DNA from: Thalia democratica
Lineage: Eukaryota
Assembly (NCBI GenBank): GCA_965202585.1
Contig: OZ241826.1
Location: 28,148,001-28,212,000 of the forward strand
DNA: 64,000 nucleotides
Reading direction: 5' to 3'
This document shows positions 12,691-63,259 of the stretch, one piece after another. Numbering within the stretch: position 1 is the stretch's first letter; each line of letters begins with the position of its first letter. The notes beneath the pieces were generated by a model, which searched no databases, had not been told where the DNA came from, and saw only the letters and a list, made by a program, of their open reading frames with translations. The position numbers were made by a program, and so were the translations under genes.

Positions 12691-14414
12691 TTGAACGCTA
12701 AAAACAACTAAATAAGCTGGAATCACGCCGATCAGCTGCAGCCAGCTTCTTTTGTTGCTTTGAAAACAGCACCCTCTGGTGTCGGAGTTTGGTAAAACTT
12801 CATCGTCCGCGCTTATTCCTTTGCTTGCGACAAAGACGAACGACAACTTTCCGACTTGTCCGTTCGTGACACAGTGGCTCATTCCTTGCAAAAGTTCTAT
12901 GTCCAAGCTGGTGGACGCAAAGCAGTCACAACTGAGTCTGCAATCGCACTGCTCCAAAAAATCCTTGTCGTTCGCCGGGTACCCTCTCGTCAGAATGTTC
13001 ACCACCTCGTTCGCCTTGACTCCTTGCAGGTAAAGTAAGCCTCCGCGTATCTGTTCGCCTTCGTCGACTGGGTTGATCCTGAAAATTTTCAGGATTGCCG
13101 AGTTCGGGCTTATTTTGGTCATCGACCCGAGCACAAACTGGTGATCTGAATCTGAAGTTTGCAGCAGCTCCGCTTTGTACTTGGCGCAATCGTTGGTTTC
13201 CGATATGCTGCTCGTATCGAACAACAATTGCTGCATAAAAGAGTTCACTTTGCGTTCAAACTGATGCTTCGCAAGTTCAACTTCTGCCCGTTGATTGACG
13301 CTTATTTCTTTTTCGAGTTCGGCAACAAAAGTGTTCATGGAGTAGTTTTCGGAACAGACAGGACTGTTTTCGATCGACACGTCTTTTGGCAGATCTGAAA
13401 TTGGCAGATATTTTGAAAACTTGGTCAGGTTAAGTTTGTCGTACAAAATGTGTTTTGCAAATTCGCGTGCGCTTTGTTTTATTTCGATTTCTATCAGGTA
13501 CGCTAGAGTTACTAGGTCATGGTGAGCAACGGCTATTCTTTTTTCGTCATATCCTACTTGAAACGTGCCCGAAAGAATTTTGTTTCCGTCGCTGTCGAAC
13601 TTGCGTGCAGGAGAGTCTTTGAATTCAAGTTGTTTTTTGGAACATGAGTTACCATCGTAGACTTTTAAAACGGGCTCGTAACTAAAACTGGAGTCAAAAC
13701 ACGGATACGAAGATTTTACAAACACAGTTGAGGTTGTCTTCTTATCGAATAACGGTTCGCGAGTTTTAACAGACTGGTCATCTTTACAGTTTCCACTAAG
13801 ACAACCTGAACTTTCAAACTTCTCATTCACTTTGCTAACAAACAAGTACGTCAAATCTTTAGCATTCCCATCGTCCTTTGCGTAGCAATTGCCGTATCGG
13901 TGAGCAATATCAAAGCTGTTCGTCAAATAAATGCCTGGGCCATGTTTGCCGGACGACGAAGGCCTCAGTCCTTCTTTCAAGATTCCCTCGACGTTGTTCC
14001 CTTTGGTGCCGTGCAGAAGCAGAAAGCTCTTACATCTGCAGCGTTCCACATTCGATTTGACCCTGTAAATCCTGATAGCCACGTTTTTGTTCGAGTACTT
14101 ATTCAATTGATTTAGTTCAGTGCTCAAACCGAGAGATCCTTTCAACAGTCGTAATCCAGATCGTCGCTTTCCAACAACTGAAGTTCATAATTGAAAACTT
14201 TTGAAAGAGATTTTTTGAATGTCGAAGTGTCGCACTCAAACAATTTTACGGCGTGTTTCACTAATTCTTCTTTTCTCGCATCGAATTGTTTGACCATTTT
14301 CTCGATTTCAATTTTCGTCTTTTGTTTTTCTTCTTCGCACAGGCGACGCAAGTAGTTCTGAGGACCAGGAAACTGTGATATTGTCTGATCTAAACATTCT
14401 TCGTTTGAATACAT
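12688..14414 (-). pseudogene. Tandem ART/PARP-fold gene, paralog 2, one frameshift
   Basis: The 90-aa and 485-aa ORFs join into a full-length paralog if one T is restored at ~14148 (TAC GA-CTG TTG vs TAC GAT CTG TTG in paralog 3). No other lesion is visible. Could be a sequencing error or a polymorphic allele. Confidence 0.8.
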
Positions 14415-27400: not shown

Positions 27401-29986
27401 CTTTGTTTAAATAGAAATTTTTGTTTTTAGTTATTCAAAGTAAGTTTTGTTTTAAACAGTTTGTTTTTTATATACAGTAAATAGTTTTTAATTTAATTTA
27501 TACATTTTAAAGTATACCCCTTATAAATTAGATTTTAATTAAATTTTTCAATCCAGTTAAATTTATTTTTTAAAGCTGTTGATTTTTATTTCTTTCTTAG
27601 TGTATGTATCTGTTTTTTGTATAAAATATATTCATCCATGACATGTCTAGTTTTATACACAGTAGCACTAAGTATTATTTAATATAGCTTTTAGTTTCAT
27701 AAATGTTATTATCTACTTATTGTGGTTAATGGTTTGGGTCAGGGTTGCCATTTTACCAGGAAACCTAGTAAATCCTGGAATTAAGGCAAAAAAACCTGAA
27801 ATTTGAGAAATTTTTAAAAAACGCAGAATTTTGAACAATAATCACTGAGAAACTTAATATTTTAGCCATTTTAAGCTTACTGAGTAGTAAAATTTTGATT
27901 AGACCAAAAAAACTATGAAATAGATAGAAAAAATTCGTCATCATCATGATTTTTTTATATTAAAATATACATCTAATGTTTAATTTTACATTACTATTTT
28001 ATTATATTATTTTGCACAGTTTCTTACCCAAAATTAATTTTAAACTAAAAATATACCCAAAAATATGTACTTTTAGAAACTTAGAGGAAATTTAGGAAAC
28101 CTAGAAAAAAATTTGACAGGGTTGCTCAAAAGTTAAGAAATAAGGAAAATTTAGGTTTTCAAAAAAAATTAAGGAAATGTCAGGAAAATTCAAAAAAAAA
28201 CCAGTCACAATTTGTCAATTTAAGTTTATAAAGTTACTTGTTTTACAAAACCTTGCAATGGTAAAAAATTAATCAAAAATTCTTTAAAGTCAGAAAAACA
28301 TTTCAAAATTTTTCTAGAGATTACGAAATTATTAATTTTCCATTTTCTTTATCTAGTGTAACATTAAAAAAATTACATGTTATAAAAATATAAAAATTTT
28401 CTTTAATCATATGGAACAAGCAGATTTTGTAAGCTTTTTAATATTGATGTTCTATAGCAAGGATACTTCCAATGTGAAACTGTGATATATACATAAAAGT
28501 TAATCTAGCATAATTATATAATTAAAGTGTTTTTTTTCTTTAAGTAAATAGTTAAGCTATTTAAAATTAATCAGTTAGTTATGTATTTTGTGTAACAAGT
28601 TGATGTGTATATCAACCCCTTTTATGATTTTTTTAAGTTGTTTTAATTTGTAAAACAAGTTTTAAGAGATGTATATGCCATGAATTAGTTTACTTATTTG
28701 TTTTTTTGTAAAATAACTTAAGTTTTTAATATAATTAAGAGTAAATTTATATGTTACAAGTTTTAGGCTAAGTGATAAGAGAAAATATTTTATACAACAG
28801 ATAAAAAGTTTTATTTTTTATGTATTTTCTTACTGTTGCTGAAATAGATATATAAAAAATGCTAAAAAAGTTGTCTTTTTTTAGACAAGCTGTGTTTATA
28901 AGGTAATAATACAAGTAAATTGCTTATAGAGCAGTTTATAGCAAAAAAATCAATCATACACAGATGGTTCAAGTAATGTGCTGGAAGTTTGTTAATTGAA
29001 TTCAGCAAAAAAAAACTGTTGTCTTAATCTGTATTATAATACGACTAAAAGCTTCATATAGTTTAAAGTGTTATATTGTGGTTGATTTAACTTCTTCAAA
29101 AATTATATACTATTTATTCAAATATATATTGTTTATTAACTAACATATAAACCGCTCAATATTTTTGTTCCTAGGATTTGGTGCACAAAATACCTTTCGG
29201 TTATTGAATCGAACTCCACGGATACCTTTTAACGTCTTGTCCAGGACGAGACAAATATAAACTATTTTAAGTGTTTCAATCTAATTATCAAATCAAAAAG
29301 AAAGGTGAATTTTAGCAAAAAAATACTTATAACACTCAACCTAAAAATATTTAAGCTTATCATTATTTTTCATTTATAAAAAAGTTGTGACCACTTTTCT
29401 AATTATTTCCATGCTTGGTATAAATATTGTTGACTTCGTTTTATCAATCTATTTTAGGTTAATATTTAAATTGTAATATTCTAAATATTCTCTACTAATT
29501 TTTTTGAGGTTTAGGCTTGGACTGTATTTAAGTTTTTTGTTCTTTGATAAGTTTTAAAGTACAGTGTGAATAAATATATTTTAAGTAAACCCATAACTAA
29601 CTTCACTTTCTTTTTTTTCTTTTCATTATATTCATTTTTTACTAATCAAGGTTTAAAAGTTTAAGTTGAAAAAGTTTAACATTTGTTGCTAAGAAAAAAT
29701 TGTAAAAGCATGTGATGTACGACTTGATAACTGAAAGACTTTTATCACATTAACTCCTTATTAGACCAAACCTTTGTTCAATAAAAAAAATAGACAAAAA
29801 AAATATGCATGGAAAGCATTGTCTGAACATTAACTGCTTACTTGGTTAAGAAATCTAAGATAAACCATTATACTTTGATTTAATTACGTTGACTACATTT
29901 AAGTAATTTAATTATTTAATTTAATAAAAAAAATGATTAATTTATTAAATTTAGACTTTTTATACAGATTGTACAGTAAATACATC

Positions 29987-31687
29987 ATGTACTCAGACGA
30001 AGAATGTTTAGATCAGACAATCTCGCAGTTTCCTGGTCCTCAGAACTACTTGCGTCGCCTATGTGAAGAAGAAAAGCAAATAACGAAAAGTGTTATCGAT
30101 AAAATGGTGGAACGATTTGAAGCAAAAAAAGAATGTTTGGTGAAAGAAGCTGTGAAATTGTTTAAATGCGAAAATTCGGCTTTCAAAAAATCTCTTTCTA
30201 AGGATTCCAAACACGAGCTTCAACTATTGGAAAGCGACGATCCGGATTACGATCTGTTGAAAAGATCGCTAGATTTGAGCGGTGAAACGAACAAATTGAA
30301 AAAGTACTCGAACAAAAACGTCGCTCTTAGGATTTACAGGGTCAAATCAAATGTGGAACGTTGCAGATGTACAGGCTTGCTGCTTCTGCACGGCACCAAA
30401 GAAAGCAACATCGAAGGAATTTTGAGAGAAGGACTGAGACCTTCTTCGTCAGGAAAACATGGCCCCGGTATTTATTTGACGAACAGCTTTGAAATTGCTC
30501 ATTGTTATGGAAATCGCTTTGTGGAAAAAGATGGTAGCGCCAAAGACTTGACATACTTGTTTGTAAGCAAAGTGAAAAAGACGCTCGCAAGTTCAGGTTG
30601 TCTTTGTGGAGAGTGTAAAGATGACCAGTCTGTTGAAACTCACGAACAATTGCTTAATAAGAATACAACTTCAACTTTGTTTATAAAATCTTCATACCCG
30701 TGTCTTGACTCCAGTCTTATTTACGAGCCCGTTTTAAAGGTTTTCGATGGAAATTCATATTCCGAAAAACAAATTGAATTTGAAGACTCTCTAGCCTGCA
30801 AGTTCGACAGCGACGGAAACAAAATTCTCTCGGGAACGTTTCAAGTTTTAAGTGACGAAAAAAGAATATTTGTGGCTCACCATGATTTATTAACTCTCGA
30901 ATACCTGATAGAGATCGAAATAAAGCAAAGCGCACGCGAGCTTGCGAAACACATTTTGTACGACTCTTCAATCTCAGATCCACCAAAAGACGCGTTGATT
31001 GAAAACAGTCCTGTTAACTCTGAAGACTGCTCCATGACTGCTTTAGTTGAGGAGCTTGAAAAAGAATTAAGCGCCAACCTGCAGGCAGAAGTTGATCATG
31101 TGAAGCACCAGTTTGAACGAAAAGTGAAGTCTTTCATGCGGCAACTGTTGTTTGAAACGAGCACCATATTGAAAACCGACAACTGTGCCAAGTACAAAGC
31201 GGAGCTGCTGCAAACTTCAGATCCAGATCATCAGTTTGTGCTCGGTAATATGACCAAAAACAGCCGAAACGCGCTAATCTTGCATATTTTCAGGATCAAC
31301 CCAGTCGACGAAAGCAAAAAGACACGAGGAGGCTTGCTTTACCTGCGAGGAGTCAAGTCCCATGAGGTGCCGAAAGTTCTGGCGAGAGGCTACCCTGCGA
31401 ACCCTGAGGATTTGTTGGGTCAGTGCGAGTGCGGAGTCAGTTACTGTTTCTGCCACGCTTCCACCATCTTGAACTGTGAACTAGGAGATGGATTAAGCCA
31501 CTGCGTCACGAACGGAAAAGTTGAAAAGCTGTCGTTCGTCTTCGTGGCGAGCGACGGCAAAGTAGCGGACAATGAAGCTTTTTGCAACTCCGACACCAGA
31601 GGGTGCTGTTTTAAAACTGGACTGGTGTTCAAGCATCAGCTGATCGGCATGACTCCGGCTTATTTAGTTGTTTTTAGCGTTCAATAG
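29987..31687 (+). CDS. Tandem-domain ADP-ribosyltransferase (PARP catalytic fold x2; second domain degenerate), 566 aa, intact
   Basis: Domain 1: ELQLLESDDPDYDLL...IYRV...LLLLHGT..NIEGILREGL..GPGIYLT..AHCYG...IFV..DLLTLEYLIEI. Domain 2: AELLQTSDPDHQFV..IFRI..LLYLRGV..VPKVLARGY...TPAYLVVF. The ATG at 29987 matches the paralog starts (MYS[DN]). All three copies have a CAG acceptor exactly 19 nt upstream of the ATG. Confidence 0.85.
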   Translation: MYSDEECLDQTISQFPGPQNYLRRLCEEEKQITKSVIDKMVERFEAKKECLVKEAVKLFKCENSAFKKSLSKDSKHELQLLESDDPDYDLLKRSLDLSGETNKLKKYSNKNVALRIYRVKSNVERCRCTGLLLLHGTKESNIEGILREGLRPSSSGKHGPGIYLTNSFEIAHCYGNRFVEKDGSAKDLTYLFVSKVKKTLASSGCLCGECKDDQSVETHEQLLNKNTTSTLFIKSSYPCLDSSLIYEPVLKVFDGNSYSEKQIEFEDSLACKFDSDGNKILSGTFQVLSDEKRIFVAHHDLLTLEYLIEIEIKQSARELAKHILYDSSISDPPKDALIENSPVNSEDCSMTALVEELEKELSANLQAEVDHVKHQFERKVKSFMRQLLFETSTILKTDNCAKYKAELLQTSDPDHQFVLGNMTKNSRNALILHIFRINPVDESKKTRGGLLYLRGVKSHEVPKVLARGYPANPEDLLGQCECGVSYCFCHASTILNCELGDGLSHCVTNGKVEKLSFVFVASDGKVADNEAFCNSDTRGCCFKTGLVFKHQLIGMTPAYLVVFSVQ

Positions 31688-42486: not shown

Positions 42487-42970
42487 ATGCGGTTGCCCAG
42501 GTTGTTGGGACTGCTCGATGTGGTGTTGGCTATGATGGCTCTAATCCTTGGCTCTGGTCTTGGAGGTTCTGGCTTTGGTGGCTCTTACCTTGGTTCTGGC
42601 TTCAGTGGCTCTGACCTTTGACTCTGGCTCTGTTGATTCTGGCTGCGGTTGCCTTGACCGTTGGGACTGCCCGTTTTGGTGCTGGTTGGCATTGCTCTGA
42701 TCTTTGGCTTTGGTCGTTGACTCTAGCCTTGGTGATTCCGGCCGTGGTTGCTCAGAACTTTGGTTCTTAATAGATACTTTTGTTGCATTACTTGACGAAG
42801 TACTGGTGACGTCATAATTTGGTATGGCGACAGCGCGATTGCGTTTTGATTCTCTAGCAGCTTCACTTCGATTGTGTTCGGCTAATTCGGCTTCTAATTC
42901 GCGTAATTCTTGTAAAGAATTGCTAGCACGGACTGAAATAAGGTGTGTGTTAAACAACTAGGGGTCACCA
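42487..42970 (-). mobile_element. GC-rich fragment, possibly the PBS + gag-like start of an LTR retrotransposon (alternatively an isolated exon)
   Basis: TGGTGACCCC (42970-42961) matches the 3' 10 nt of eukaryotic tRNA-Trp. It is immediately followed by a 138-codon low-complexity frame without ATG (coiled-coil-like ELRELEAELAE; 9-aa KVRAT[EK]ART repeat). No LTR pair or TSD found. Confidence 0.35.
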
Positions 42971-44374: not shown

Positions 44375-44432
44375 CTTCAAGGTATTTCGATTAATCAGGG
44401 TTAGTTTTGGAAGAGAAAATTCAGACAGTGAC
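44375..44432 (-). CDS. Homeobox gene A, conserved downstream exon (58 nt)
   Basis: tacag|GTCACTG...TTGAAG|gtatt. Same length and sequence as 63202-63259. Phase-1 reading gives GHCLNFLFQN* in both copies. Confidence 0.55.
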
Positions 44433-44739: not shown

Positions 44740-44827
44740 CTAAAGGTAGATACTCTTTCACTAGCTTATTTTTTGTGCGGTTTACACAAGTATCCCTGAA
44801 TTTTTTCCTACGATTGCTCACCCATCT
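44740..44827 (-). CDS. Homeobox gene A, helix-3 exon (RWVSNRRKKFRDTCVNRTKNKLVKEYLPL)
   Basis: tttag| acceptor at 44829-44828; 88-nt homolog of 62798-62885. The donor reads AAGAGT instead of GTGAGT; read-through stops at 44690. Confidence 0.85.
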
Positions 44828-45141: not shown

Positions 45142-45283
45142 CTCAATTTTAACAACATTCACGACACCTAGTGCTTTCGCCAGTAACTTCTTGTCTTCAC
45201 GTTTCCACACTTTCAATTTGTAACACATTATGTAACTGTGCAGAACTAAAAGCTGCCACTTTTCAAATCGAAGTCTCATTGGT
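45142..45283 (-). CDS. Homeobox gene A, helix 1-2 exon (PMRLRFEKWQLLVLHSYIMCYKLKVWKREDKKLLAKALGVVNVVKIE)
   Basis: aaacag|A...GAG|gtgag, 142 nt. The phase-2 start matches the upstream AG|gtaag donor. Differences to 62113-62254 include synonymous ones (CTT CGA/CTG AGG, AGT/AGC, GAA/GAG, GTT GTT/GTC GTG). Confidence 0.88.
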
Positions 45284-46154: not shown

Positions 46155-46963
46155 CTTCTCCTAGCATTTGTGTACCTCGCTTGTCTTGGTAGTGGTGCCG
46201 CATAAGGATGGTGTCGTCGACTAGTAGGTCGTTGTCCACTGTTCAGCAATTGGTGTTGTTGCTGTACATGGCTCGCTACATTCGCTGATTGCCTTGGTGT
46301 GGCCGTAAAACCATGACTTGGTTCACTGTTCAGGAATCTTGTCGGTTGTTGAAGATCACTGTTCAGAAATCTTGCTGGTTGTTGTTGGGCTCCTGCATAG
46401 GCTTGTTGGCTAAACTGGCCACCTACCTGAGCAGTCGGGTGAGGGAATTGACCAGGGTTTGCCTTGCGAATCGGGCTATTAAACTGTACATGGCCACCTC
46501 TGTGAGCTGATCCATTAAAACTTCCGTAACTAGTTGTCGGAGGTTGACCTCTATAATGCGAATAGCTGCCTAACTGAGCTGGTGCGTTAAACTGCCCATA
46601 ACTTGGTGCCTGTGCTGGTTGGACGGACAGTCTATAGTTCGTCATACTCGCTTGCCCGTTCAAGTGTCCGTAGCTTGCTCTGTAGACCGGTCTAATAAGA
46701 TTACCGTAAGCTGCCAATCCTGGTTGGTTAAGACGTGCATAGTCTACCGTCTGCCCTGGCTGATTGAGCTGTCCATGGTCTGCTCTATATACCGGTCCGT
46801 TAAAATGTCCACTGCTTCCTACGTGTGCTTGTGTACTACGATTTCCATGGCTTGCTATCGGAGAAGAAGTGCTGAAAAGTCTAAAGCTTGCCATTTGAGT
46901 TGGCTTATTGACTTGATAAATTGGAATCTCGTTCAAGTTTGCTTTAACATTTCGTTTAGCTTC
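46155..46963 (-). CDS. Homeobox gene A, large low-complexity (G/Q/N/P/S/Y-rich) exon ending in RHHPY...ARR
   Basis: Acceptor tactaataaacaacgcag|GAA; donor AG|GTAAGA, whose TAA is the ORF-track stop. 809 nt (phase 0 to phase 2). Paralog of 60348-61192. Confidence 0.85.
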
Positions 46964-46990
46964 CTGCGTTGTTTATTAGTATTATAATAC

Positions 46991-47124
46991 TTAAAATGAC
47001 CATAGCTTCCTACGTTTGCTGGTCCAACAGAGTTACCATAGATTGCCATTTGAGCTGGCTTGTTGACTTGATAAATTGGAATCTCGGTCAAGTTTGCATG
47101 CACATTTCGTTTGGCTTCCTGCAT
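46991..47124 (-). repeat. Partial tandem duplicate of the start of the large exon, beginning ATG CAG GAA
   Basis: Encodes MQEAKRNVHANLTEIPIYQVNKPAQMAIYGNSVGPANVGSYGHF, closer to gene B (60342-60477) than to the adjacent exon of gene A. Confidence 0.85.
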
Positions 47125-48379
47125 GTATTTAACTAGATGAAAAAAACAAAAAATTAAAAAGTTATTCAACTTTTTAAAGCAGTAAAACTTTGAAGATTTT
47201 ATACTTTGTGAAAATTAAACAGGTGTAAATTAAATAAAACTTAATTTGTTAAGTAGTATTTGATATTTTTAAATCAAAACCTAAACTGAAAAAATTTAAG
47301 CCTTTTTGCTTTATATTTAAACCTTATAACTCTATATTTTTTCTAAAAACAATCTTTCAAAATTTTATATTTTTTACAACTAAAATTTAAACTTAATGTT
47401 CTAAAGTTAAATTTAAACATTGAATCATATTTAAAAAAATATTTTAAATTTTTAATTAAAATAGTAAGTTTTAAATACTTTAGTAGCAATTCACTATTTG
47501 TAGTATTATCACTGTTTTATGCATTTAAAAACAAACATTTACCTTCTAAGACAAAATACAATTTTACCAAAATAACTTATTTTTGTCAAAAATATAAGCT
47601 GATATGTTTAAAAAGGTAAAAAAATGTTTAGTTGTTTCTAAGTTTAAGGTATAAATGAAGAATGAATTAGCTTTCTGCATTGAAATGAAATTTTGTAACA
47701 CAAAAACTAAAAGTCTACAGTACTCTCAGTGTTTCTCAAACCTTTTTTCATAAGGCCCCCTTTAAATAAATCAATAAGCTAACGGCCCCTGCGAAATAAT
47801 TTTTCAATAAACTACCTAAAGCTTTTTTTTCACTCTCCATCAACAACACCAGAATATGTAGTGTAAGTTTCAGCTTTAGCCAAAATATTTTATATCTCGC
47901 AAATGTTTCAACAAGTTTAAAGTGAAAAATGACCGTCTAAAGTTTAAAAAAGTTTTCATAAAAACCAGTCAGCAATAAAGTTATCCAATTAAGCATTTAA
48001 GTAAACATGATTGTGTATCACAAAGTTCAATAATGAAGTCTTCGTCATAGAAAAGCAAAGTCACTGTAAAACTTATAAAATAAAACGACCGCCCCAGTTA
48101 GCACTCTAAAGATTAAAAAAAACGCTAAGAATGCGGCTTAGCTAAACTACTTAAAAAGCAAAATACCGCTTCTAAAAGATTTAAAAACTCTGATTATAAA
48201 AGCTAGGCATTAGAAGCAATCTGGCATATTTGTTACAGCGCTAGATTTATCTGTTTGTATTTCCCTTCTAGGAAAATATTCCTGTTCTAAGTGGCCTATC
48301 CCAGTATATATACTGATACTTATACCATTTTAAAACCAATATTCGTAAATAAATGAAACTGAACTTATAGGTACTAGAC

Positions 48380-48765
48380 TAGGGTTTCCCAAAATTGGCC
48401 AGATTGCCTATTTTTGGGCCATGATAGATACTCAAAGGGCCACGAGCTGCAAAAGGGCCAGAGGAGCGAGGGGGGGGGGGGAGAAGTGAGTACTTGAAGA
48501 GCCAAAAGGGGGCCATGAGGTAATACTTTGAGATTTAGACTAGATATTGTGGAAGTGTTGAAGAGCAACATAAAAAAAGTTATATGTGTTTTTATTGGTA
48601 AATTTGAAACTTATACTATATATTCTACAGTTGCTAATAAAGAGCAAAAAAAGGTCTTAGGTGTTTCTAATGATAGATTTTTGAGAAGTCATGTTCGGGG
48701 GATGGGGGGACAGCTTTTTATTTCTTTAAAGCGGTCCATTTAAAAAAAACGTTTGGGAAATTACG
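48380..48765. mobile_element. hAT-type MITE, 386 bp
   Basis: Perfect 8-bp TSD TACTAGAC (48372-48379 / 48766-48773; nnnTAnnn). Imperfect TIRs TAGGGTTTCCCAAA ... TTTGGGAAATTACG. A separate unpaired hAT-like end, CAGTGTTTCTCAAACC, lies at 47727. Confidence 0.75.
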
Positions 48766-48777
48766 TACTAGACTCAC

Positions 48778-48870
48778 CAGTAGCAAGCTATGCCAACCAA
48801 AGTGCAATAAGCTTGATACTTGCGAGCAGTAGAAGGATAGCTCCTTTGCTCGTAAACCGTTAAAAACCAT
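48778..48870 (-). CDS. Candidate upstream exon of homeobox gene A (MVFNGLRAKELSFYCSQVSSLLHFGWHSLLL)
   Basis: cattttacag|ATG...CTG|gtgagt, 93 nt, phase 0, compatible with the phase-0 acceptor at 46963. The homologous segment at ~421-526 also has acceptor and donor sites but not the same frame, so it may be UTR. Confidence 0.35.
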
Positions 48871-51800
48871 CTGTAAAATGTAATTGTACAAAGTTTTTGG
48901 CGCTTTTTTTGGTTTAGTAGAGAATTCCATTTTTAATCTAATTACGGTTGTTTTGTACTCTTTTTCTTTGGTTTTAGTACAACAATAAACTATTAATTTT
49001 ATTTTAACTATAATTAACTTGTTTTTTGTTATAGATGAAATTATTGATTTTGTTATAAAATTTAAAATATTTAAAACTATCAACACATGTGACACTTTTG
49101 TAAACTATTTTAATTTAGGACATATTTGAACTCGATAGGTACAAATGTAAACTTGTTAACAAAAGCTTATTTAAAACTATATTAGACACAAACTGTTTTG
49201 AAGTTTTAAATTTTATAACTTAAGTAAGTAGAATTTTATTTAAAAAATGGAATGAACTAGTTTTAAATAAAGTTAGTAATTTTTTACAAAAACAAATAAG
49301 CTTTTGTTATTTCATACATAAAAATTTGAATTGTTTTTTAAATATTTAAAAAGCCGCATGTCAACTATTTTTTTTTCTTGTACTTCTAGTTAAAAAACTT
49401 ATGTTAATAAAAAAAAATTAAAATATTAATAATTTATTTCCAAAATTACTTAAAATCACTATATTTAAAAAGTTATTGTAAACATATATATTGAAAAACA
49501 AAAATAATTCTTAGGTAATTATTAAGTTTACACGAACATTTTTTTTTAATATATGTTACTTTTTGTGATATGGCCTCTTGTTATTTTCAAAGTAATTACA
49601 ATTGTCGGAAATCGAATTGTCTGAGTTCAAATAGTCGTGATCCAATTTTATTTAATAACTTATACATTTGTTTTTTTTTTGTGAATTCTTAACGAACTAT
49701 TTCTTATTTCTCCTTAAAAAAAATTTCACGTGTTGTAATTCTAAATACAAGAATCATAAGGGTATCAACTATTTTATTACTAATACAAAACAGTTCTTTC
49801 ACTAAGTCAATAACTATTTTTCTGGTAAAAGATGCTTTCTTTAAAAATATAATTACCTACAATTTTAAATATAAATGATACACTTTTAACAGTACAGTAA
49901 CAATGGCAGTATTATAGAAATACTTTTTAAAACTAGATGAAACTTTAATTAAGATCAATAAAACTATAGAAATTTAAAAATCATACACATTTTATTCATT
50001 TAGTCAACTTATAGAAAACTTTTGTCTATGAATATTCATAACACTAATTTAAAATACTCGAATACGTAAATAACATAAACGAAAAGTATAATAAAACTTA
50101 CATAACGTTGAGCAATACAAATTCTAATACAAATAATTTTAATCTAAACATGACAATTAACTAAATCTTTTATAAACAATCTCTATTTTAAAGATAGTAC
50201 TAGTTCTTTTAAGGCATAGTTATGAATACTTTGTTTGACAAAAACTTGTTTTTTAAGCCTACAAAAATTAAAATTTACACAAAGCCAAAATCTAATGGAG
50301 TTACACAGATTTTAGAAACATAGCTCAAAAAATAAAACAATATTTTCCGGTTGACTTTTAACAATTTAAAGAAAACATCGGCGAAAGCCTACATAGCCTA
50401 AGCCTTGACCTTCGTATACATTGAGACAAATCTCAGATACGGTTCGCAGTCTACCGAAAGCTTGTGGTCGGATGATCGAAGTAGTATGATTAAATTTTCA
50501 TTTTAATAATTTTAGCATAAATACAATCATAAGTAGTGTTACGATGTATCAAAATAATCACTATTAACAAGTCAACATGCAAAAGTATTCAAGTAGTTCT
50601 TTAAATTCACTTAATTTTGAATACTTTTTTAATATTATTAGGAATCAAAAATGTCTCATAAATTATAAATGTTTGATTTTGCAATCTAAGCTTATGATTT
50701 GATGACCTTTTACAAAATAAAACTGTGAACTGAACTAGCTATTACATAAGTTTAATACTAAGATGGTTAAACAGTTTAATGTCAAACTATTGATGTTTAA
50801 AAAAACTTAGCGTTTTACTACAACTATTCTCTTATTTTTTACTCTAAAAGTGTTACATTTACATAAACTTTAATATTTCACAATTCAAAGTTCATTATTG
50901 TTTGTAAACAATAATATAGCCTATTAAAATTTTAAGTTTTTTTCAAAGTACGGCTTTTGAAAATTATATACATGCAATACGTTTCTTATTTCAAGCCATT
51001 ATTTTCAGAAAGTCAGCGACATTTCTTTCTTTAATAAAAAAACTAATGTTCTAGATAAACTAAAGTTAAACAAAAGCAGTTCGATAACTTACAAGCTTCT
51101 GATTGCCATCCTTTATGATATTAACAAGAAAGTTTTGAAAATTAATAACCTTTTAACTTTAGTAAAAGTCTACACTACGTAAAAAATAGGAAAAGCCGAA
51201 GTATAATATTTTATAATTGTTAAAAGTTTAAAAAACTAATAAAACACCTTAAGTTGCAATTTAATCTAACAATATCATAAAATTTCGTATTTTTTAATTA
51301 CAGTTATAATACTTTCAGTAGTAAATTTAAACTAATTTTAGCTTTAAGTTGTTAATATATACAATGAAGTTAGTTTAACAGATTATCTTACATTTAAGAC
51401 TTATTAGACAAAAAAATAAGACAAAATGATTTTATAAAATTATTTGTTTTTTTTTTATACATGACATATCACATAGTAATAAGGCAGTGTGATCTTCAGA
51501 CTTTGTAAATTAACAGTCAAAAAATTAATAAAAAAGTATAAAGCTTTTTGAAATTTTAGTACCACCGGTTCACCAGCTATATCATGAAGCTTCTTAGGTT
51601 AACAATAAAAACATTAGTAGTTAATAAAATCTGTAATAAACTATCACTATATTTAATTTCAATTTATCTGCAGTTTTAAATACAAACTAGCTGAACTGTT
51701 AAAGAACGATGCGATTTTGGGACTATATATTTTTCTAACACCAATATATACTTTTATATCATTTAAACTACAGCTGTTTTAGTATTAACTGAAATTATTA

Positions 51801-53519
51801 AATATTAAAATTTCTATGTAGCTCAAATGTATTGGAGGCAAAAATTATTAACGGGTGCAACTGGTATTTGCAACTTTCAACTATAAGAGTGTAAATAGAA
51901 AAAAGCAATATTTGTGAAAAAGGATAGCTCCTTTTGGTGAAAACCAGTTAGAAAACTTTTGAACAGTAATAAAAACTATACTTTACAACGTTTTTATACA
52001 AGTACTAAAAAACAAAAACCTAAACTTATGACAAATTTGCAATATTTATGATACTTTTGCACACTTAGTCACGGCTCAAAAATACTCAAGAATTAAATAA
52101 TTAAAACTATTTTAAAATTAAAATTTTATTTAAGCAACATAATACTATAAGTTACTAGTATTAAAAAAATATAATAGACTAAAACATTAAATATTTTATG
52201 ATAAACAGTCACCCGAGTTTGGAACCCATTTGAGTGCATTAATTACAAAAAAAAAATTAAGCAACTATTAAACATTTAAATAAGGCATAACTCATTCATT
52301 ATTGAATAAAAAACTAACAATAACACACATAACAAACATTGGTTATCAATTTAAAATAAGTTATTTACTGCATAATATATTTTTTAATCGACAAAAAATG
52401 TTACTTTTAACAATAAACATACTGACTTTAAAGTAGATTATTAAGTAAAATTACTTTAGATTAAAAAACAACAACAACATTAAAAAGAGAAACAGAACTT
52501 AAAAAGAAAGAGATGAAAACTCATATTTTCTTTAAATTATTTTAATACAATGAACTCTAGCAGATTGTTATTAATACAACTATAAAATAACTCAAAATTA
52601 TCACGAATAAAATAAATTTTACTTTTTCTTTATTAACTTTTGTTGGTTTACGAAATTACAAGTATACTTTAAAGTTTATTATTACCAGTACAAATTTACG
52701 AGTTACACTAATCTTTTAGAATTTTATAAATAATAGTTATAAGTATTTAGACACTACTATTTGTTTTGTTCTATACTTATTACGGTATACCTTAAAACCA
52801 TACAAAAGATCTAAAAAAACTATATTTACTATTTTTTTTTTGACAAATGCTTTTAAAGCAGTAAGTATAAAAACTATAGTGAGAGAGTTAAAAACAATGT
52901 AAACTGAGGACTATTAAAGAGAGACTCTTTTTTTCTCATAAGGGCGGTGAGCTGTTAGCTAATAACAAATTTATCACTTATTATAACACTATTAGGAGAT
53001 GTTGAGAAATATTAATCCAGGTTTATACTTTTTTTTCGTACTTAAAAAAGCTAATTATGATTAAGTAATAGTTTGTTTTGACTAGTGTTAGTATATATGT
53101 TTTTTTAATACTTATATTAAATATTTATAGTTATAAGACAATCTAGTCAACCTATTAAAGTATTAAGCTAAATTTATTAGCTAGTTTTCCACAAAGTTTA
53201 TTTTACACAATCTATGTAATATATAAGCTTTTGTTAAAAACATAAGTGTCAAGTAGCTCAAGTAAGGCGATTCCAAATTAAATTAAACAGGAATATTATA
53301 ACTTTTGATTATTAACTAATAAAAATAAAATTCAAAAATTTATTTACAATACTTATATTTTAATTTTAAGCTTAATATTTTGTGAGCCTAGTCTTTAGAT
53401 ACATTCATATTCATTATGAAGCAAATTTTTATTTAATACAAAAAGATATATTAAATTTTGATTGTTTTGTTTTGAAACTAAATCTTTTGACAGCTGTCTC
53501 TTTCAGTTCAGTTGGCAAC

Positions 53520-54461
53520 ACTAACACAGAATTTCTTGACGTCTCCCTGGACCTATCCCTAAAAACCTACAGTCCCTACCGTAAACCTAATTCCAAAACT
53601 AGCTACATCAACAACAATTCCAACCATCCTAAAAATATACGTAACAATATACCAAAAATGATTGAAAAAAGATTATGCAAACTATCTAAAAATGAAGAAA
53701 TTTTTAATAACATCAAAGGCTTATACCAAAATGCATTAAATAAAAGTAATTTTAAATATAGTTTAACCTACAAACAATTTAATAATACAAATATTAACAA
53801 AATTAGAAAAAGAAATTGCATTTGTTACAATCCCCCCTTTTGTAAATCTGTACAGACTAAAATTGGCAAACTTTTCCTGGATTTAGTAGATAAACATTTT
53901 AAGAAAGACACCATCTATCACAAAATAATCAACAGAAATTCTATAAAAATATCATACTGCTGCACACCAAATATTATGGCCCTTATAAATTCCCACAACA
54001 AAAAACTCACGAAAAAATCAGATAAAAACGAAAAACTTTGTAATTGTAGAATAAAAACAAACTGCCCCGTGGATAACAAGTGTTGCCTAAGTAATGTAAT
54101 ATATCAAGCTAAAGTCTCCACATCCGTAAATGACCACAAGATTTATATTGGTTCAACCACAAGAACATTTAAGTCTAGATATAATGAACACAAAACCTCT
54201 TTCCCAAAACCTTTTAAAAGCAAACCCAAAAATTGTACCAAACTTGCAAATCACCTATGGGATCTATACAGTAACCATATAAAATACTCAATTGAATGGA
54301 AAATAGTAGAATCAGTAAAATCTAACACAAACCATACTAACATGTGCACTTTATGTAACCTAGAAAGACTCCATATAGCCCTAGCAGATAAGAGAAAAAC
54401 CTTAAACAAGAGAAACGAACTGATAACCCAATGCCCACATTACTTAAATGAATATTTATAA
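53520..54461 (+). mobile_element. 5'-truncated Penelope-like retroelement (RT thumb + GIY-YIG endonuclease)
   Basis: FLDV.L.L..KTYSPYRKP..SYINNNSNHP (thumb); CNCRIKTNCP..KC linker; VIYQAKV...YIGSTTRTFKSRYNEH (GIY-YIG); terminal C..C..E...H.C.H. About 310 codons without a stop. Confidence 0.9.
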
Positions 54462-57400
54462 TTTATATCTCACATAGGTATCAATTTTATTAAGATTTTT
54501 TATTATTTGTGCATATATCATAATATTATTCCCATTCTCAGTCTTAAAATATTAAAACTATTTTATTTTTTTCAAGTCTGTTTATTAGTTAAATATATTT
54601 CATTAAGATATAAGATAAATTGTGCATACCCTATAATATACCCATTTCCAGTTGTAAATCATAATTGTTGGAGAATTAGTATATATATATATTTTCTGGA
54701 GTTGAATTATTAGTAGTTTATACTCTCTTTGATTATCTCTCAACTAAATATATTTAATTTTTTATCTTGTTTTTTAAATTTAACATCTGAAATCTAACCC
54801 TCATTCTATTTTTCGCTTATCTAAAATTTTTCACAAAAAGCCATTTTATTCTTTGTCATCATAATACAACTGTGTTAACAACAACAATGCTTTCAAAAAT
54901 TTTTTTTTAATGCTTACTCCCTTGTTTTATTTTGAACATTATTACATTATTAATTTATTATTAGAACTGTGTGCTTAATAATATGTATTTACTACTCCAT
55001 AACTTTTAACTCTGTAAAAGTTATTATCTCTTTAAATCTATTAGATATCAATACCCCACAGTATACTATGGTTTAATTGTATTGTTTGTAGACTATATTT
55101 TGATATTTTTTAAATTAAAGGTTGTTTTGCATTAGAATAATATAATTCTTAAGTTATTTTTTAATTTTTTTGTATATAAACTTAACTCAAACCAATTTTT
55201 AAAGATTTGTCATTTTTAACATTATTATTTTACTACAGATTTACAATTTGAAAATCCGCTCTGCGGTGAAACTGAGTAATTGTAGATCAAACGATTTGGC
55301 AAAGCTGAAAAAAATATGTCCAATTTTTCGATTTTTTTTAGATTTTAAATACCTGATAAACTTCAATTCAATTTTAATTTTGTTTTAACTGATATTAGTC
55401 TATATTGAAATGATAAAGGTAGCTTGAAATAATGGGAGGCAAAAAAAAAACGGTTTGAATAATTTTGCGCAATTTTCAGTAATAAAATAAAGATAGAAAA
55501 AAGAGAATTTTTTAAATTTGAGAGCTCCGGTTTGAATGAAACCGTTGGAAAAATAGCTGAACTGTAATAAAAGTTTTATTTAAAGTATTGTCACTGCAAG
55601 TGGAAAAGTTTTATTAACATTCAAACTTATGACAAATTCGTAATACTTATGACATGTTTGTGTAATTATTTGCCACTCTAAAAAAACTTACTTTATCCGT
55701 AAAATTAAACATTTTAAGTGTTTTAAATACTGCTAATACATTATAAAAGTTTAATTTTTGTAGCTTTGAATTACAAAAAACCTTTATAAGAGGACATTCT
55801 TTGGGTTTTATTTTAAGTATTATCAGTATTTAGGACGCATAAGAGCGCATATATTAAAACATTTGTATTGTGTATTTGTATAATTTTACCATTAGACTTT
55901 ATCGAGTATAATATAAACAAACTAAGAATAAGTTTATGTGTTTTGAAATTACTTAACATTTGTAATAATAAAGATAAAGTGAAAGAGGTTTTTTTATTAA
56001 CACAATTTACTTACTGCACAATAAAGATTTCAATACACATAAAAATGGTATCAACAATAAAAATACTGAACTTAAAAGCTTAGTAAATTTCTTTACATAA
56101 GTTAGTTAATGTAAAAAGTATATATAATGAGAACTTATTTTAAACTTTTTAAATTTCGGTTTTTTAACTGTGTTCTTTATTTTTAATCCATACAACAACA
56201 TATTTGTAAAACAATAAAAGTAAAAATATGTGTATAAATAATGTATATATTAGTTAAGATAGACTATTAAATATTATATTTAAATAAAAATAAACTAACT
56301 TAGAATACTAATATTGTATACATTTTTTCTTGCTAACTTTTTTAGCATTAACGGTATTCTAGTGTTTTTTATGTTTAACGTTGATATTCATGGTTCGAAT
56401 GTTATAACGGTTTTAAATTTTTTGTAAAATGTTTTGAAATAAACATTTAGCAATACTTTTTAGTATAAATTTCGTTTAAATATATGTCAAAATAGTCTTA
56501 AATGTTTTTTTAAAGTTGTTTGTACACTTGAACTTTTTGTTTGAATTTTTTTTGATAGTAGTAAAAATGCATTTGTACTCTAATTAGAGAGTTGGACTCT
56601 TTTTATTTTTAAGGCAGTAAAAAGTTTTAGCTAATAATTTATCAAGTACTTTTTATTATATTATTTGCGTAGCACTATGTTCAAAAATATAGTGCAAGGT
56701 TTATATTTGTTACACTTTTTTTATTAAACCTAGTTATAACAGTGTTTGTCTATAATACAGTTAGGACTAAAAACAAACAAGAACCTATATATATTTTTAT
56801 TTTTATATCTTTGTTATAACTGTTGTCTGCTTTAAATGTTTAAATAATTACAATAAATATTTCAACTAAGAAGGTAACTTAGTTTAACTACTAACTTGTT
56901 AGAAAATTTTTTAGTAGTTTGTTTTACACAAACATATTTAACATTATCGAGCATCACTTAAAGTGAATTATTAACATCGAAAACTTTATAACAAATAAAG
57001 ACATTTATTATAAACTAAATAGTGATTCTCTTTTTCAATTTAGTTTTGTTTATACAGATCAACTTCGCTCCAACTACTACGCTGGAATAAACAACCAGAG
57101 ATGTGAGTTTGAGCTTGATTATTTTATTAATTTATATGTAATTTAACTGAGTTAAATTTTCAAACAACAACGACTATCCTAAATGTTCTGGATGGACCGA
57201 GTTCGATCCGTTTATAGCAGATTTAGGTAGGTATAACGAAAACATATGAAAGTCTAAAAATACTGAAGTAGCATATATTTTTTACTAATAAATTGTATAT
57301 GAAACAATAAGGCTCACTTTAAAGTTCAATGCTTCATGTACTTTTATAAAGTTTTTAATCAATTATTGGTGCTGTAATTTTTGACTAAAACATTAAATTT

Positions 57401-60347
57401 TTTTCGACTTAAAGCAAAAGTTTTTGGTGTATTGCTTTTAACAGACATCAATTAAAGTTGCTTGTGTTTTCTTTTAAAGTAGAGCTACAATTAAAAAAAT
57501 ATTTATTTAGTTTATAAATATATATACTAGATTTTATTCTTTATTGATAAACAACCATTTTCAAAGCGTTTAATTTTTTGAAAACTAACATCATATCTCT
57601 AAAACTTTACTTTTCAAACAGATAAATACTTTGCAAATTGCTCTTTTATTTACCAACAAACTTGTTTTTTCAGTTGTTTAAAAACAAAGATTATTTGCAA
57701 TAAATAATGTTTAAAGATTTATTTCATTTGCAATTGCTAGATATAAAAAACAGTTGTTTGCGGCAGCGCTGCAATAAAATGCTTAAAAATTTATGATTTT
57801 TAGTTTACATTTTAAAATTTACATTAGATTTAGGCTATCAACTTAATAATCAGTTAATGTTTTTTAGTTCCTTATGACCTGTTAAACAATCAGTTAGAAC
57901 GATACTATTACCCAGATGAATGGACCCTTGTATATGAGGCTAGTTTATATACATTATACACCAACTAATTAAATTTGTTTCAATTTGCTCCATTTTCTTA
58001 AAATTTCTTTTAGTGGTCATAAAAATTAATTGTAACATATATTTTTGACTTTACTTCTAGTTTTCAAACTTTATTACAAAAGTTGAATAAAAGGTCAAAT
58101 GAATTATTGACATTCATTTAGGGTTAAATGAAAATAAAGACTTGATATTATTAAATGTAAATCGCAATACAGTTAGTAGTTTGATTTGTTTTAAATAATT
58201 AGATTTCATAAACCATATAGTTAATAAATACATTCGTAGTAGAAATATACACAATGTTCTTGTTTAAAGCACACATTTTTTTAAAACTTGCTTTGGATTG
58301 CTGTCTTAAACCTATTTTTCAACACAAATCATGTTCATACAAAAAAGTTAAAAATTAAACATATTTTCCAATTTTTTTTCAAATGAATGTTTTTAACTTT
58401 AATTTTTTATTAGTTAACAAAAGCTAAGGTATCGACTTAAAATGAGCACCACGTCGCCGTATTGTCCTTAACAAAGTTAGATTCTTGCTGTTAGATGTAG
58501 CGCAATTTAGTAAACCTCTAGTTGCTAAATCTTTGATGTACACATAAATATCTATAAACTTCTATCTGCTCATTGTTAAGCTTATGTTTTTAATCGCTAC
58601 CACATATTGATATTTTTCCATCACTAAAGCTACTTTTTTTACATATAACTAAATTTACTAGATTTTTAACTTTTAAGAGCTTTCAAACAGATTATCTGGT
58701 GTTAAATGAAAACATTTTAGATAGTAAAGTTTTAGCATTCCTAAGTAGAACTTATTGTGACACTACACCTAACTTGAGAAATTTTTCGAGGCACGAAGTA
58801 AAAACTGAACAAATTGAAAGTATTGTACTTTGAACTGTTTCGTTTTTAAAAGACTCAGCTTATTTTTATCGATTTTTAGTCAAAACTCATTTTCCTAAAA
58901 TTTGCTAAAAAACATTATCTATAAGTTTTTTAAAGTATGTTCGTCTTTTTACGCTTGTGTCTTTATAAGCTCAGTTATTTTTAAGTGAACATTATAAAGT
59001 TCATGTTTGCCTTAATTTTTAACTTTATTAGAGAAAATTTGATGAAAGCTTCTAATTTTAGATAAAGCAGCTTTTTCTAAACAATGGATCAGGTTTACTA
59101 GATATAAATTATTTGGGCCGCAGCGTTTTATATATTTGTGCATAAAACTGACTCTTCTTGTTTAACTACCAAAAAAATCATCATATATTTATGTTAAAAT
59201 TAGAAATACAATAGTATTTTCTTTTATTTTTCTTCAAATCCTTCACTCTTATCTTAAGTTTCTTTCTATTCTTCTTAAAATGAAGTACAGTTAATTTATT
59301 AAACATAAACAGTACGTTTTACATCGAAATATGATGAACGGATTTTTAAATTTTTAGATCTTAGTTAGTAAAAAGTAAATTTTTTTGACATAGGTTTGTG
59401 CTACACTCGTTTCTTTATGATATATTTTTGCAGTTGGTTTGTGAACAAGTCATAAAACTGGTCTTTTTTTCACTTGGCTTAGTGTAATGTATAAAGCTTG
59501 TAGACTGTTCATATTTATCTTACATGACGAAAATATAGCAAACTCATTCATTTCTTGTTTGCAACTACTCAAATTTAGACCTCTTATCCAATATATTTAT
59601 AAATATAAACTTAAAGTTTAGTTCGTTTCTGTATTTCAAGCTTGAGTTAATGAAAACAAAAGTAAAAGTTTTATAGAAACTATTTTTCTGCATTTTAAGC
59701 AATTTTTAAAAAGCTATAAAATTAATTTTAACTCATTTGATGTATTATTAAAATAGTACTTACAAAACTGTTTAAAGCAATTTTAGATTGATTTTCTCAT
59801 AAACATTAACAAATTTCGAGCTTTAAAACTGTAGCAATGCATATCTTCTACAAAAATCCAAAACTATTAATTAATTGTTTATTTTATCTTACAAAGATTA
59901 AAAACCATTTAATAAAGTTTGCAAACTGTTGCGAATATTTGAGAACTATAAAGTTTCAAAATAAATTACATTTGTGTATTAAAGTGTTGAAAATTTGTTT
60001 TTAAAATAAATTTAAGAAAACTATTAAAATACTTTAAATTAGTTTCCAAATAAACTGAAGGCTTTATAACTTACATACTTAATAAATGCCGAAAACAACT
60101 ACAAAAATCTCAACTTCTAGAAGAGAATTAATATAGTTTATTCTCTCAAGACTTTAATTAGTAAACTAAGTTTCTGTCAAAGACCTCGTCAGAATTAAAT
60201 TTGAATAATTATAGAGGTACTGACAACTGTAATTATAGAGGTCGTAGACCGAAACTTAGCTTACTAATCAAAGTCTTGAAAGAAAACAAACTATAATAAA
60301 TTCAGTTTAAATTTTCACCAAGTTTTATACTGATAAAAAACTTGCAG

Positions 60348-61192
60348 GAAGCCAAAAGAAATGTGCATGCAAATTTGACCGAGATTCCAATTTATCAGGT
60401 CAACAAGCCAGCTCAAACGGCAGGCTATGGTAACTCTGTTGGACCAGCACACATAGGAAGCTATGGGCATTTTAACCAACCAGCCCAAAACTGTAGAAGA
60501 CCAATTCAGACGGGAGCAAACTTTAATCAACCAGGGCAGACACCAAGCTTTGGGCGTCTCAACCAACCAGGATTGGCAAGCTACGGTAATTTTATTGGAC
60601 AGGCTAGCTATGGCTACTTTAACGGACAAGCCCGAATAACAAACTGGTTGGCACAACCAGGGCATAATAGAGGCGATGGACAGACCAACGGACCAGCTCA
60701 ATTGGGTAGCCATGCGCATTTTAGAGGTCCATCTTCGACAACTACTAACAAAAATTTTAATGGACCGGCTCACATAGGAAGCTATGGGCAGTTTAACAGT
60801 CCAATTCGTATGGCAAACCCTGGAAAATTCCACCACCAGACTGCTCAGGTAGAGGCCTATGGACAGTCTGGTCCACCAGCCCAAGCGGGAATCCCTGGAC
60901 AACAAAAGCTGACCAGTAGACAGCAACCAGCACGTCTAAGGTTCACTGGACAACAACTATTTCTGAACAGTGAACCTCAACAACCAGCAAGATTTCTGAA
61001 CAGTGAACCTCAACAACAAGCAAGGTTCCTGAACAGTGAACCTCGTCATCGTTTAACCGCCGCAAACTTACCAAGGCAAGCAGCAAATGCAGCGAGCAAT
61101 GGACAACAGCGACACCCACCACGTTTACTGACCAGTGGACGGCACCATCCTTATTCACGACCAGGACAAGCGAGGTACGCTAACGCTAGAAA
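60348..61192 (+). CDS. Homeobox gene B, large low-complexity exon ending in RHHPY...ARK
   Basis: Acceptor tactgataaaaaacttgcag|GAA; donor AA|GTAAGC, whose TAA is the ORF-track stop. 845 nt, phase 0 to phase 2. Confidence 0.85.
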
Positions 61193-62112: not shown

Positions 62113-62254
62113 ACTAATAAGACTGAGGTTTGAAAAGTGGCAGCTTTTAGTTCTGCACAGCTACATGATGTGTTACAACTTGAAATTATGGAAATGTGAG
62201 GACAAGAAGTTACTGGCGAAAGCACTAGGTGTCGTGAATGTCGTGAAAATTGAG
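62113..62254 (+). CDS. Homeobox gene B, helix 1-2 exon (LIRLRFEKWQLLVLHSYMMCYNLKLWKCEDKKLLAKALGVVNVVKIE)
   Basis: aaacag|A...GAG|gtaag; 142 nt, identical length to the gene A exon. Confidence 0.9.
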
Positions 62255-62797
62255 GTAAGAAGTTGTATGCTTGAGTGTATATAGACGTAAATATGGTAAA
62301 ACCATTTATTTAAACTTTATGTACAAATCCATTTCTAGTTGAATAGTCAAACAAACAATATTCTTAGAACCTCTAGTGTAAAAAAAATGATTTGATCACT
62401 TTTAAGTTTATTAAAATTTACTACGCTTATTACCAATCAAATAATCTTTTTAACTCAGCTGTTTTTAATACCAAAGTTCTAAAAGTTTAGTAAAAATTTT
62501 GCACATTTAATAAAAAACGAATATACTTCTAATTATACTAGAAATAAAGTTGCTTTTATTTTAGAAGCGTTTTTTTTTGTTTATAGCCTAGTACTCTCCT
62601 AAAATAAGTTAGGAAAAATTGAGATAGGGCTTAACTTAAAATCAGTGTGTTTAGCATATCTGATTTAATATACAATAAATACATTGTGGTTTTTTATTTC
62701 TTTTGGTTTACTATTTAAACCACAAATTTAAAATGGTGGTTTATAATTTTATCACCTAAAACTTTGTACAAATTTACTCTTCTGTTATGATTTATAG

Positions 62798-62885
62798 AGA
62801 TGGGTGAGCAATCGTAGGAGAAAATTCAGGGATATTTGTGTGAACCGCACCACTGATGAGCTGGTGAAGGAGTATCTGCCTTTAG
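62798..62885 (+). CDS. Homeobox gene B, helix-3 exon (RWVSNRRRKFRDICVNRTTDELVKEYLPL)
   Basis: tttatag|AGA TGG GTG AGC AAT CGT AGG...TTA G|gtgagt; 88 nt. W48, N51 and R53 are in register after the phase-0 intron. Confidence 0.9.
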
Positions 62886-63201
62886 GTGAGTATTTATTTT
62901 CATTACCATAGTTAATATATCAATACAAAGCTTAATGTTTTCCATAAAACTTTTTTTTTTTAATTTAACCATTAAGCTTTTCATGTTCTATTTCTTGTTA
63001 TATTTAAATCTATTTCTTAGTGTCTTGATACGAACCAAGCAACGTCTTAAATAATAACAAAAATACATTTCACCATCTTTAAATTTTTAAACATACTCAA
63101 GTATATATAAATAAATTACTCTGAGTACTAAATACTTAGTTGCATCTTATATACTAACAAGTCTCACTTATTTATAAAACATTTTTTTTAACTTTCCACA
63201 G

Positions 63202-63259
63202 GTCATTGTCTGAATTTTCTATTCCAAAATTAACCCTAATAAATCGAAACAATTTGAAG
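63202..63259 (+). CDS. Homeobox gene B, probable last coding exon (GHCLNFLFQN*, stop 63231-63233)
   Basis: ttccacag|GTCATTG...TTGAAG|gttag; 58 nt as in gene A. The three differences before the stop are all synonymous in this frame. A further conserved acceptor opens an exon at 63356 (44280 in A). Confidence 0.6.

Follow-up and report, generated by a model that had tools for sequence, protein, structure and literature searches.

The window analysed here, a stretch of 64,000 nt from the genome of Thalia democratica (C1:28148001-28212000, 27% G+C), carries two homeobox genes, which we call gene A and gene B. All positions given below are those of this window, and the genome searches were carried out on the 802-Mb assembly. 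The sequence evidence indicates that the two genes belong to a real, lineage-private family of homeobox genes that is held under purifying selection, and on balance we favor reading it as an orphan family that is TALE-like, and more precisely PBC-like, and not Pax-like. When a five-sequence profile of the family was compared with the PDB, the eight highest-scoring entries were all Extradenticle (Exd) or PBX1, at 32-33 bits and expectation values (E) of 3.5e-7 to 1e-6, and seven of them aligned over positions 1-60. The search gave 85 matches and classes were read from the best 60 of these 85, all of which were homeodomains. The next class, BarH-like 2, reached 23 bits in an alignment that runs from helix 2 onward only, and the Aristaless, DLX, DUX4 and MEIS proteins scored 16-20 bits with the same profile. 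The same ranking is found in the animal's own genome, where a hidden Markov model (HMM) built from 13 family sequences scored the spliced PBX homeodomain at 26.1 bits end to end and none of about 50 other homeobox loci above 19.9 bits. Searched alone, the window copy matched eight sequences, every one a homeodomain; six belong to TALE proteins (MATalpha2, TGIF2LX, PBX1), and with E values of 0.09-0.9 none is individually significant. A previous sequence-only reading of this DNA had set TALE proteins aside; from the top eight profile matches, and from six of the eight weak ones, they turn out to be the closest relatives.

Gene A is modeled with four exons:

60342..61192, + strand: gene A exon 1, about 283 codons, with donor AA|gtaagc in phase 2
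62113..62254, + strand: gene A exon 2, with acceptor cag|A (aaacag) and donor GAG|gtaaga; the splice sites are kept in paralogs
62798..62885, + strand: gene A exon 3, with acceptor tatag|AGA (tttatag) and donor G|gtgagt
63202..63233, + strand: gene A exon 4, the last ten codons GHCLNFLFQN, of which the first is split, and the stop TAA at 63231-63233

Together these exons make a single open frame of 370 codons. Exon 1 is of low complexity and rich in Q, A, G, P and N, with three ARFLNSEP repeats and an RHHPY motif about 15 residues ahead of the homeodomain, and its 3' end encodes the first two residues of the homeodomain arm. A Pfam scan of exon 1 of genes A and B found no domain, PBC and PAX included. 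Exon 2 encodes the N-terminal arm, helix 1, an extended loop 1, helix 2 and the turn, ending at position 46, and exon 3 encodes the recognition helix from position 47 (RWVSNRRRKF) and then a conserved C-terminal extension (..T.DELVKEYLPLG). These two exons are joined in phase 0 at canonical GT/AG sites (..VVKIE|RWVSNRRRKF..). The phase-1 junction between exons 3 and 4 has its counterpart in two paralogs, L011, which reads GHCLS without an intron after the glycine codon, and L012, which has a matching phase-1 peptide behind an acceptor. An alternative exon-3 donor at 62889|GT, in phase 2 and with a longer open exon 4, is ruled out by the same two paralogs.

Spliced in this way, exons 2 and 3 give a homeodomain of exactly the length that the sequence-only reading had claimed, 63 residues from R1 to about residue 60+3, with a spacing of 43 residues between F8 and W48 in place of the usual 40. 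The residues it had listed are likewise all present, namely V49, S50, H17 and a substituted position 20 (M in gene A and I in gene B) together with the loss of Y25-P26, and an invariant tryptophan occupies the would-be Y25 site. Its argument that changes shared by both paralogs cannot be sequencing noise is strengthened by gene B, which has every one of them, and by a family of 17 loci with a conserved exon junction and constrained codons, described below. In comparison with a 60-residue domain, two residues are added in the stretch from F8 to L34 and a third ahead of helix 3. This corresponds to the placement suggested earlier, two extra residues in loop 1 and one before helix 3, which is backed by paralogs L010 and L017, by the HMMER alignment and by the AlphaFold model. 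With a canonical helix 2-3 turn and no extra residue ahead of helix 3, L010 and L017 come to 62 residues, from which it follows that the family gained the turn residue secondarily. In the HMMER alignment with Extradenticle and PBX1 the long loop stays aligned, one residue is deleted at the start of helix 2 and one is added in the helix 2-3 turn. Because the two further residues are internal to exon 2, no alternative splicing restores a 60-residue domain, which disposes of the splice variant that the earlier reading had considered. Extra homeodomain residues have arisen many times independently, and being 'atypical' is no classifying character (PMC4901127).

AlphaFold models were made of the exon-2 and exon-3 pieces separately. 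The exon-2 piece, with a mean predicted local distance difference test score (pLDDT) of 76, is modeled as a helix at 8-23, a four-residue loop KLWK and a ten-residue helix at 28-37, so that the predicted helix 1 exceeds the usual length by three residues. The exon-3 piece (pLDDT 75.5) is modeled as a helix at 2-15 and a short helix at 19-26 over TDELVKEY, and a fourth helix is likely within the conserved C-terminal extension, which is about 25 residues long. A residue table was drawn up from 13 distinct family sequences. W48, N51 and R53 are invariant in it, and R5 (K in two sequences) and K/R55 are invariant or nearly so; with L16 and the three-helix layout, these are the homeodomain hallmarks that the family retains. 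The hydrophobic core is variable, position 49 being V, L or A and position 20 being M, I, L or F. The base-reading positions vary by subfamily, with R, K or N at 47, S, M or T at 50, and R, K, I or A at 54, and at these three positions the family is unlike every canonical homeodomain class. By locus, position 50 is S in the window subfamily and L014, M in L010, L011, L012 and L017, and T in L013.

The homology of the family to the homeodomain is best seen in paralogs outside the window. Four of five members match the Pfam Homeodomain model PF00046 (curated cut-off 22.9 bits), the paralog matches having E values of 7e-5 to 4e-4. L014 reaches the cut-off at 22.9 bits, and L012 and L010 score 21.8 and 20.4 bits, over profile positions 1-57; the window copies are 53-65% identical to these three over exon 2. 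The Homeobox_KN model (PF05920, cut-off 24 bits) scores L010 at 20.3 and L011 at 18.0 bits, under its cut-off and over helices 2-3 only, and does not match the window copies. The paralog matches to PF00046, together with the E of 3.5e-7 obtained by the family profile in the PDB, make the homology secure, and the window copies are the most derived members of the family. A feature search of the ESM Atlas with exon 2 did not rise above chance level: it returned bacterial thioesterases, at scores no higher than 0.84.

A search of the genome with exon 2 found the identical 17 loci whether a single sequence or a 12-sequence profile was used, and the next match has an E of 0.3. Ten of the loci lie in C1 27.2-28.55 Mb and the rest at C1 82.1 Mb, on C8 (four), on C10 and on C7; L011 sits 333 kb past the end of the window. 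All 14 loci that have both homeobox exons share the acceptor, the donor and the phase, with the junction placed a single codon ahead of W48. The ratio of nonsynonymous to synonymous substitution rates (dN/dS) on 76 homeobox codons is 0.07-0.29 for the seven closest paralogs, at dS of 0.04-0.68. Between gene A and its nearest paralog, L002, dN is 0.019, dS is 0.21 and dN/dS is 0.09, and gene B differs from L004 by a dS of just 0.04. Exon 1, with a dN/dS of 0.44-0.49, has evolved faster than the homeobox exons. Some members are damaged: L008 is without the donor and exon 3, L009 carries W11C, and L015 is without an exon 3 within reach.

Outside this genome the family is scarcely represented in the databases that were searched. 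The exon-2 profile, compared with 1.84 billion representative proteins, found just one 42-residue unspliced open reading frame (ORF) fragment of the family and two spurious repeat proteins. A search with exon 1 found two prokaryote-style ORF calls on marine metagenome contigs from Tara Oceans, one of them also with exon 2. The Tara Oceans contigs L092 and L093 (2.6 and 1.8 kb) hold family members; L092 shows the gene architecture of the family, begins with ATG and keeps exon 2 intact, and L093 has lost the start ATG, with CTTAG in its place, as has gene A. A search of the published literature found no description of this homeobox family. The earlier proposal of a new subclass can be retained in the form of a lineage-restricted, constrained family of 17 loci, whose lone relative in the protein databases is an ORF fragment.

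The likeness to PBX and Extradenticle, the closest homeodomain relatives of the family both in the PDB and in its own genome, extends to several particular features. Both are 63 residues in overall length. Position 19 is aromatic and is followed by a hydrophobic residue at 20 (SY[FML] in the family and EYF in PBX/Exd), helix 2 and the turn share LA+..GIT, position 47 is polar, and N-[KR]-R-I-[KR]-Y is found in some members. PBX1 has a short helix C-terminal to helix 3, and such a helix is predicted in the family. The bona fide PBX gene of this genome lies at C4:38269001-38285000 (L072, L073) and has a PBC domain of 102 bits and a canonical TALE homeodomain (..NPYPSEEAKEELARK..), the helix-3 exon being located more than 2 kb downstream.

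A number of observations weigh against a PBC-like reading or against the genes as such, and those that concern the integrity and expression of the window copies are given with the pseudogene alternative below. The margin of PBC over the other classes, 6-10 bits, is partly due to loop length. In place of PBC-A and PBC-B, exon 1 of genes A and B has low-complexity sequence (no PF03792 match), [IVL]-W-[KR] stands where PYP would be, and the homeobox intron lies at 46/47, whereas that of the PBX gene in the same genome lies at 44/45 (VSQ|VSNW). The family has S, M or T at position 50, where the PBC class has G (PMC4901127, Table 1). The spacing between F8 and L34 is increased by two residues and not by the three of TALE domains, although the placement of the gap is ambiguous under the HMMER alignment. 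The Pfam scan of genes A and B gave no homeodomain match even at E<=10, and Foldseek gave no significant match of the exon-2 model in the PDB (best E 3.6). Among the weak Foldseek rows, 18 of 22 were homeodomains and the top TM-scores belonged to PBX1, Exd and TGIF1, to which we give almost no weight. The family differs from PBX/Exd also in a helix 1-2 region that is one residue shorter, in a helix 2-3 turn that is one residue longer in most members, and in having 17 fast-evolving copies where PBX is a single conserved gene. Descent of the family from TALE or PBC genes is, on this evidence, not secure.

Gene B, which runs on the reverse strand from 47124 to 44401, has the layout of gene A and is arranged head-to-head with it, 13 kb apart:

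46967..47124, - strand: gene B duplicated 5' fragment, with the family start ATG at 47124
46155..46936, - strand: gene B exon 1, long open part, accessible only from an internal ATG
45142..45283, - strand: gene B exon 2, encoding the homeodomain from its arm through helix 1 and the loop to helix 2
44740..44827, - strand: gene B exon 3, recognition helix RWVSNRRKKF and C-terminal extension
44401..44432, - strand: gene B exon 4 homologue, sequence still conserved

Both window copies may be impaired, with the defects lying outside the homeodomain. The family start, ATG CAG GAA GCC, is present in the upstream copy of gene B and in the Tara contig L092. At the start position of gene A, 60342-60344, the sequence is TTG and not ATG, the next conserved methionine codon reads ACG, and exon 1 has no in-frame ATG other than codon 157, at 60810. 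Gene B has a 158-bp tandem duplication at its 5' end that displaces the reading frame of the remainder of exon 1, and translation from the ATG at 47124 would meet a stop after 63 codons. Exon 3 of gene B has in addition lost its donor GT (G|aagagt), and read-through past this exon would alter the C-terminal tail. A serious alternative, to which we give a substantial chance but somewhat less than an even one, is hence that genes A and B are young pseudogenes of a family that is functional, now or formerly, elsewhere, and that their intact homeodomain exons reflect recent inactivation. The visible damage in L008, L015 and L009 is in keeping with this, as is the outcome of a sequencing-run search, which found no RNA run for this stretch; the three runs that cover it are genomic DNA contigs that span introns and exons alike. 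The pseudogene explanation has to contend with the fact that all four exons of gene A and the long exons of gene B are open, and with the comparison of gene A and L002 (dS 0.21, dN 0.019), which indicates constraint through most of their divergence. Translation from a downstream ATG would still give the homeodomain, and an upstream exon or trans-splicing may be involved.

The origin of the family from a PRD or PRD-like (Pax-type) gene deserves consideration because of its intron. Position 46/47 is the classic PRD-class intron position, and the family has an intron there, in phase 0, in all paralogs; many PF00046 matches of this genome likewise end at profile position 46, and the true PBX intron is found elsewhere, at 44/45. 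With the Pax3/7 and Pax4/6 genes the window subfamily thus shares both the intron position and S50. The latter, which is also found in L014, is the commonest position-50 residue of PRD-class domains (PMC4901127). Under this explanation S50 and the intron would be ancestral, and the longer loop 1 and the PBX-like look would be convergent. We consider it unlikely: Aristaless, PRRX/PHOX2B and DUX4 score just 16-20 bits in alignments confined to helices 2-3, whereas PBC reaches 33 bits in an end-to-end alignment; the family members that diverge most have M or T at position 50; and an aromatic 19, a polar 47 and an extended loop are TALE-like traits. The Pax3/7 and Pax4/6 domains are 60 residues long, with F49, F20 and Y25, and are joined to a paired domain. 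That no paired domain had been seen in the sequence-only reading is confirmed by the Pfam result for exon 1, and the four-exon model could not accommodate such a domain. The comparison with Pax made in the same reading is not supported, given a gene model without a paired domain, an S50 that is confined to a subfamily and PRD-type scores far below those of PBC.

For an orphan, PBC-like family, the most likely function would be that of a sequence-specific transcription factor. The four-exon gene is predicted to encode a protein with a long disordered N-terminal region rich in Q, G, P, N and Y, a homeodomain of 62-63 residues and an extension of about 25 residues. The residues expected to anchor the domain to DNA (R5, W48, N51, R53 and a basic 55) have been kept, and the presumed base readers at 47, 50 and 54 and part of the core have been replaced. 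This combination of conserved anchors and variable base readers, under strong purifying selection, fits transcription factors with subfamily-specific targets. An altered DNA specificity is plausible, the target sequence would be expected to differ between subfamilies, and the disordered region could have a role in activation or self-association. It could also be imagined that the fold has been kept while its main role has become that of a protein-interaction or RNA-binding module on a condensate-forming region, and not sequence-specific DNA binding. The replacement of F49 and F20, the charged residue now found in place of I/V47, the rewritten loop of the Hox-peptide pocket of PBX and the FET-like, low-complexity N-terminal region would all accord with such a role. 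It is nevertheless quite improbable in our view, as R5, W48, N51, R53 and K/R55 hardly vary, if at all, across the 13 distinct sequences and the same WVSNRRRK helix is carried by MATalpha2, a protein that binds DNA specifically. A chance resemblance to homeodomains in AT-rich non-coding DNA, which the missing Pfam matches of the window copies and their short exons, invisible to ORF lists, might bring to mind, is to all intents ruled out by the 17 loci, the conserved splice sites, the dN/dS of 0.07-0.29, the Pfam matches of paralogs and the PDB E of 3.5e-7.

Several other features of the window and of the genome were noted. Just 5' of gene A, at 60001-60200, lies a very high-copy repeat, with a summed contig depth of about 47,000-58,000, compared with 30-700 elsewhere, in the three DNA runs; many contigs stop at 60131-60192. 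Between the two homeobox genes, at 53382-54461 (+), there is an ORF of 359 residues with a GIY-YIG-like stretch (KIYIGST..YNEH) and no Pfam match at E<=0.01, which may be a mobile-element remnant. Downstream of gene B, at 42541-42957 (-), is a charged low-complexity ORF of 138 residues, locally richer in G+C and also with no Pfam match. Intron-free PARP-like ORFs are found at 4312-5921 (-), 12688-14414 (-) and 29933-31687 (+), the last of which scores 24.2 bits with PF00644, slightly under the cut-off, and the PARP-like and homeobox families may have been amplified jointly through segmental duplication. A tandem array at 23191-24288, with 32 copies of a 34-bp unit at 90% match and a strong G+C skew (-0.45), is open in all three forward frames and gives rise to long spurious ORFs. 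In the genome as a whole, a first look with PF00046 gave 870 candidates and the TALE model 250. Long tandem homeobox arrays include those at C6 69.8-70.2, C4 36.2-36.7, C7 51.0-51.8 (multi-homeodomain ORFs), C6 37.5-37.7 and C1 37.2-37.6 Mb.

Homeobox genes are among the best-catalogued families of animal genes, and new families outside the established classes are uncommon. The family described here shows the extent to which a homeodomain can drift under purifying selection: F49, F20, I/V47 and the YP motif are gone, both loops have a new length, and as a result the standard Pfam model no longer recognizes the domain. If expressed, members of the family would provide a natural series of paralogs that differ at 47, 50 and 54, in which the evolution of DNA specificity could be studied, and would add to the evidence, such as the 870 candidate matches, that the homeobox complement of this genome has been greatly remodeled. 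Annotation of such genes in AT-rich genomes needs profile searches that proceed exon by exon.

The best of the eight matches of the window copy is a fungal TALE protein, MATalpha2 of yeast, to which the recognition helix of gene A is identical at its start over the eight residues WVSNRRRK, including V49, S50, N51 and R54. The combination of V49 and S50 is therefore not unprecedented. Elsewhere in the domain there is hardly any similarity (E 0.09-0.34; the family profile scores it at 15.9 bits), and since the protein comes from a different kingdom, the identity is most likely convergent. S50, N51 and R54 are what we take to be the base-contacting trio in the MATalpha2-DNA structure, and by analogy they suggest a TGT/TGA-type core for the window subfamily. 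A more elaborate scenario would be that a TALE/PBC offshoot lost its PBC domain, rewrote the Hox-docking loop, gained a FET/prion-like region and diversified its base readers by tandem duplication, with WVSNRRRK arising convergently for a TGT-type site. Taken as a whole this scenario is improbable; were it true, this pelagic lineage would possess its own set of condensate-forming transcription factors, which would read DNA with new specificities, in parallel to the SPILE genes of spiralians or to the mammalian DUX/ETCHbox genes of early embryos. SPILE homeodomains retain the 3-residue loop extension. The SPILE genes belong to another phylum and had an independent origin, and their expression and function in early blastomeres have reportedly been demonstrated. 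As clade-restricted, duplicated and fast-evolving TALE homeobox genes that are reported to have no counterparts in other phyla, they provide the nearest published precedent for a lineage-specific expansion of TALE genes (PMC8524836, PMC6118893, PMC5322547).

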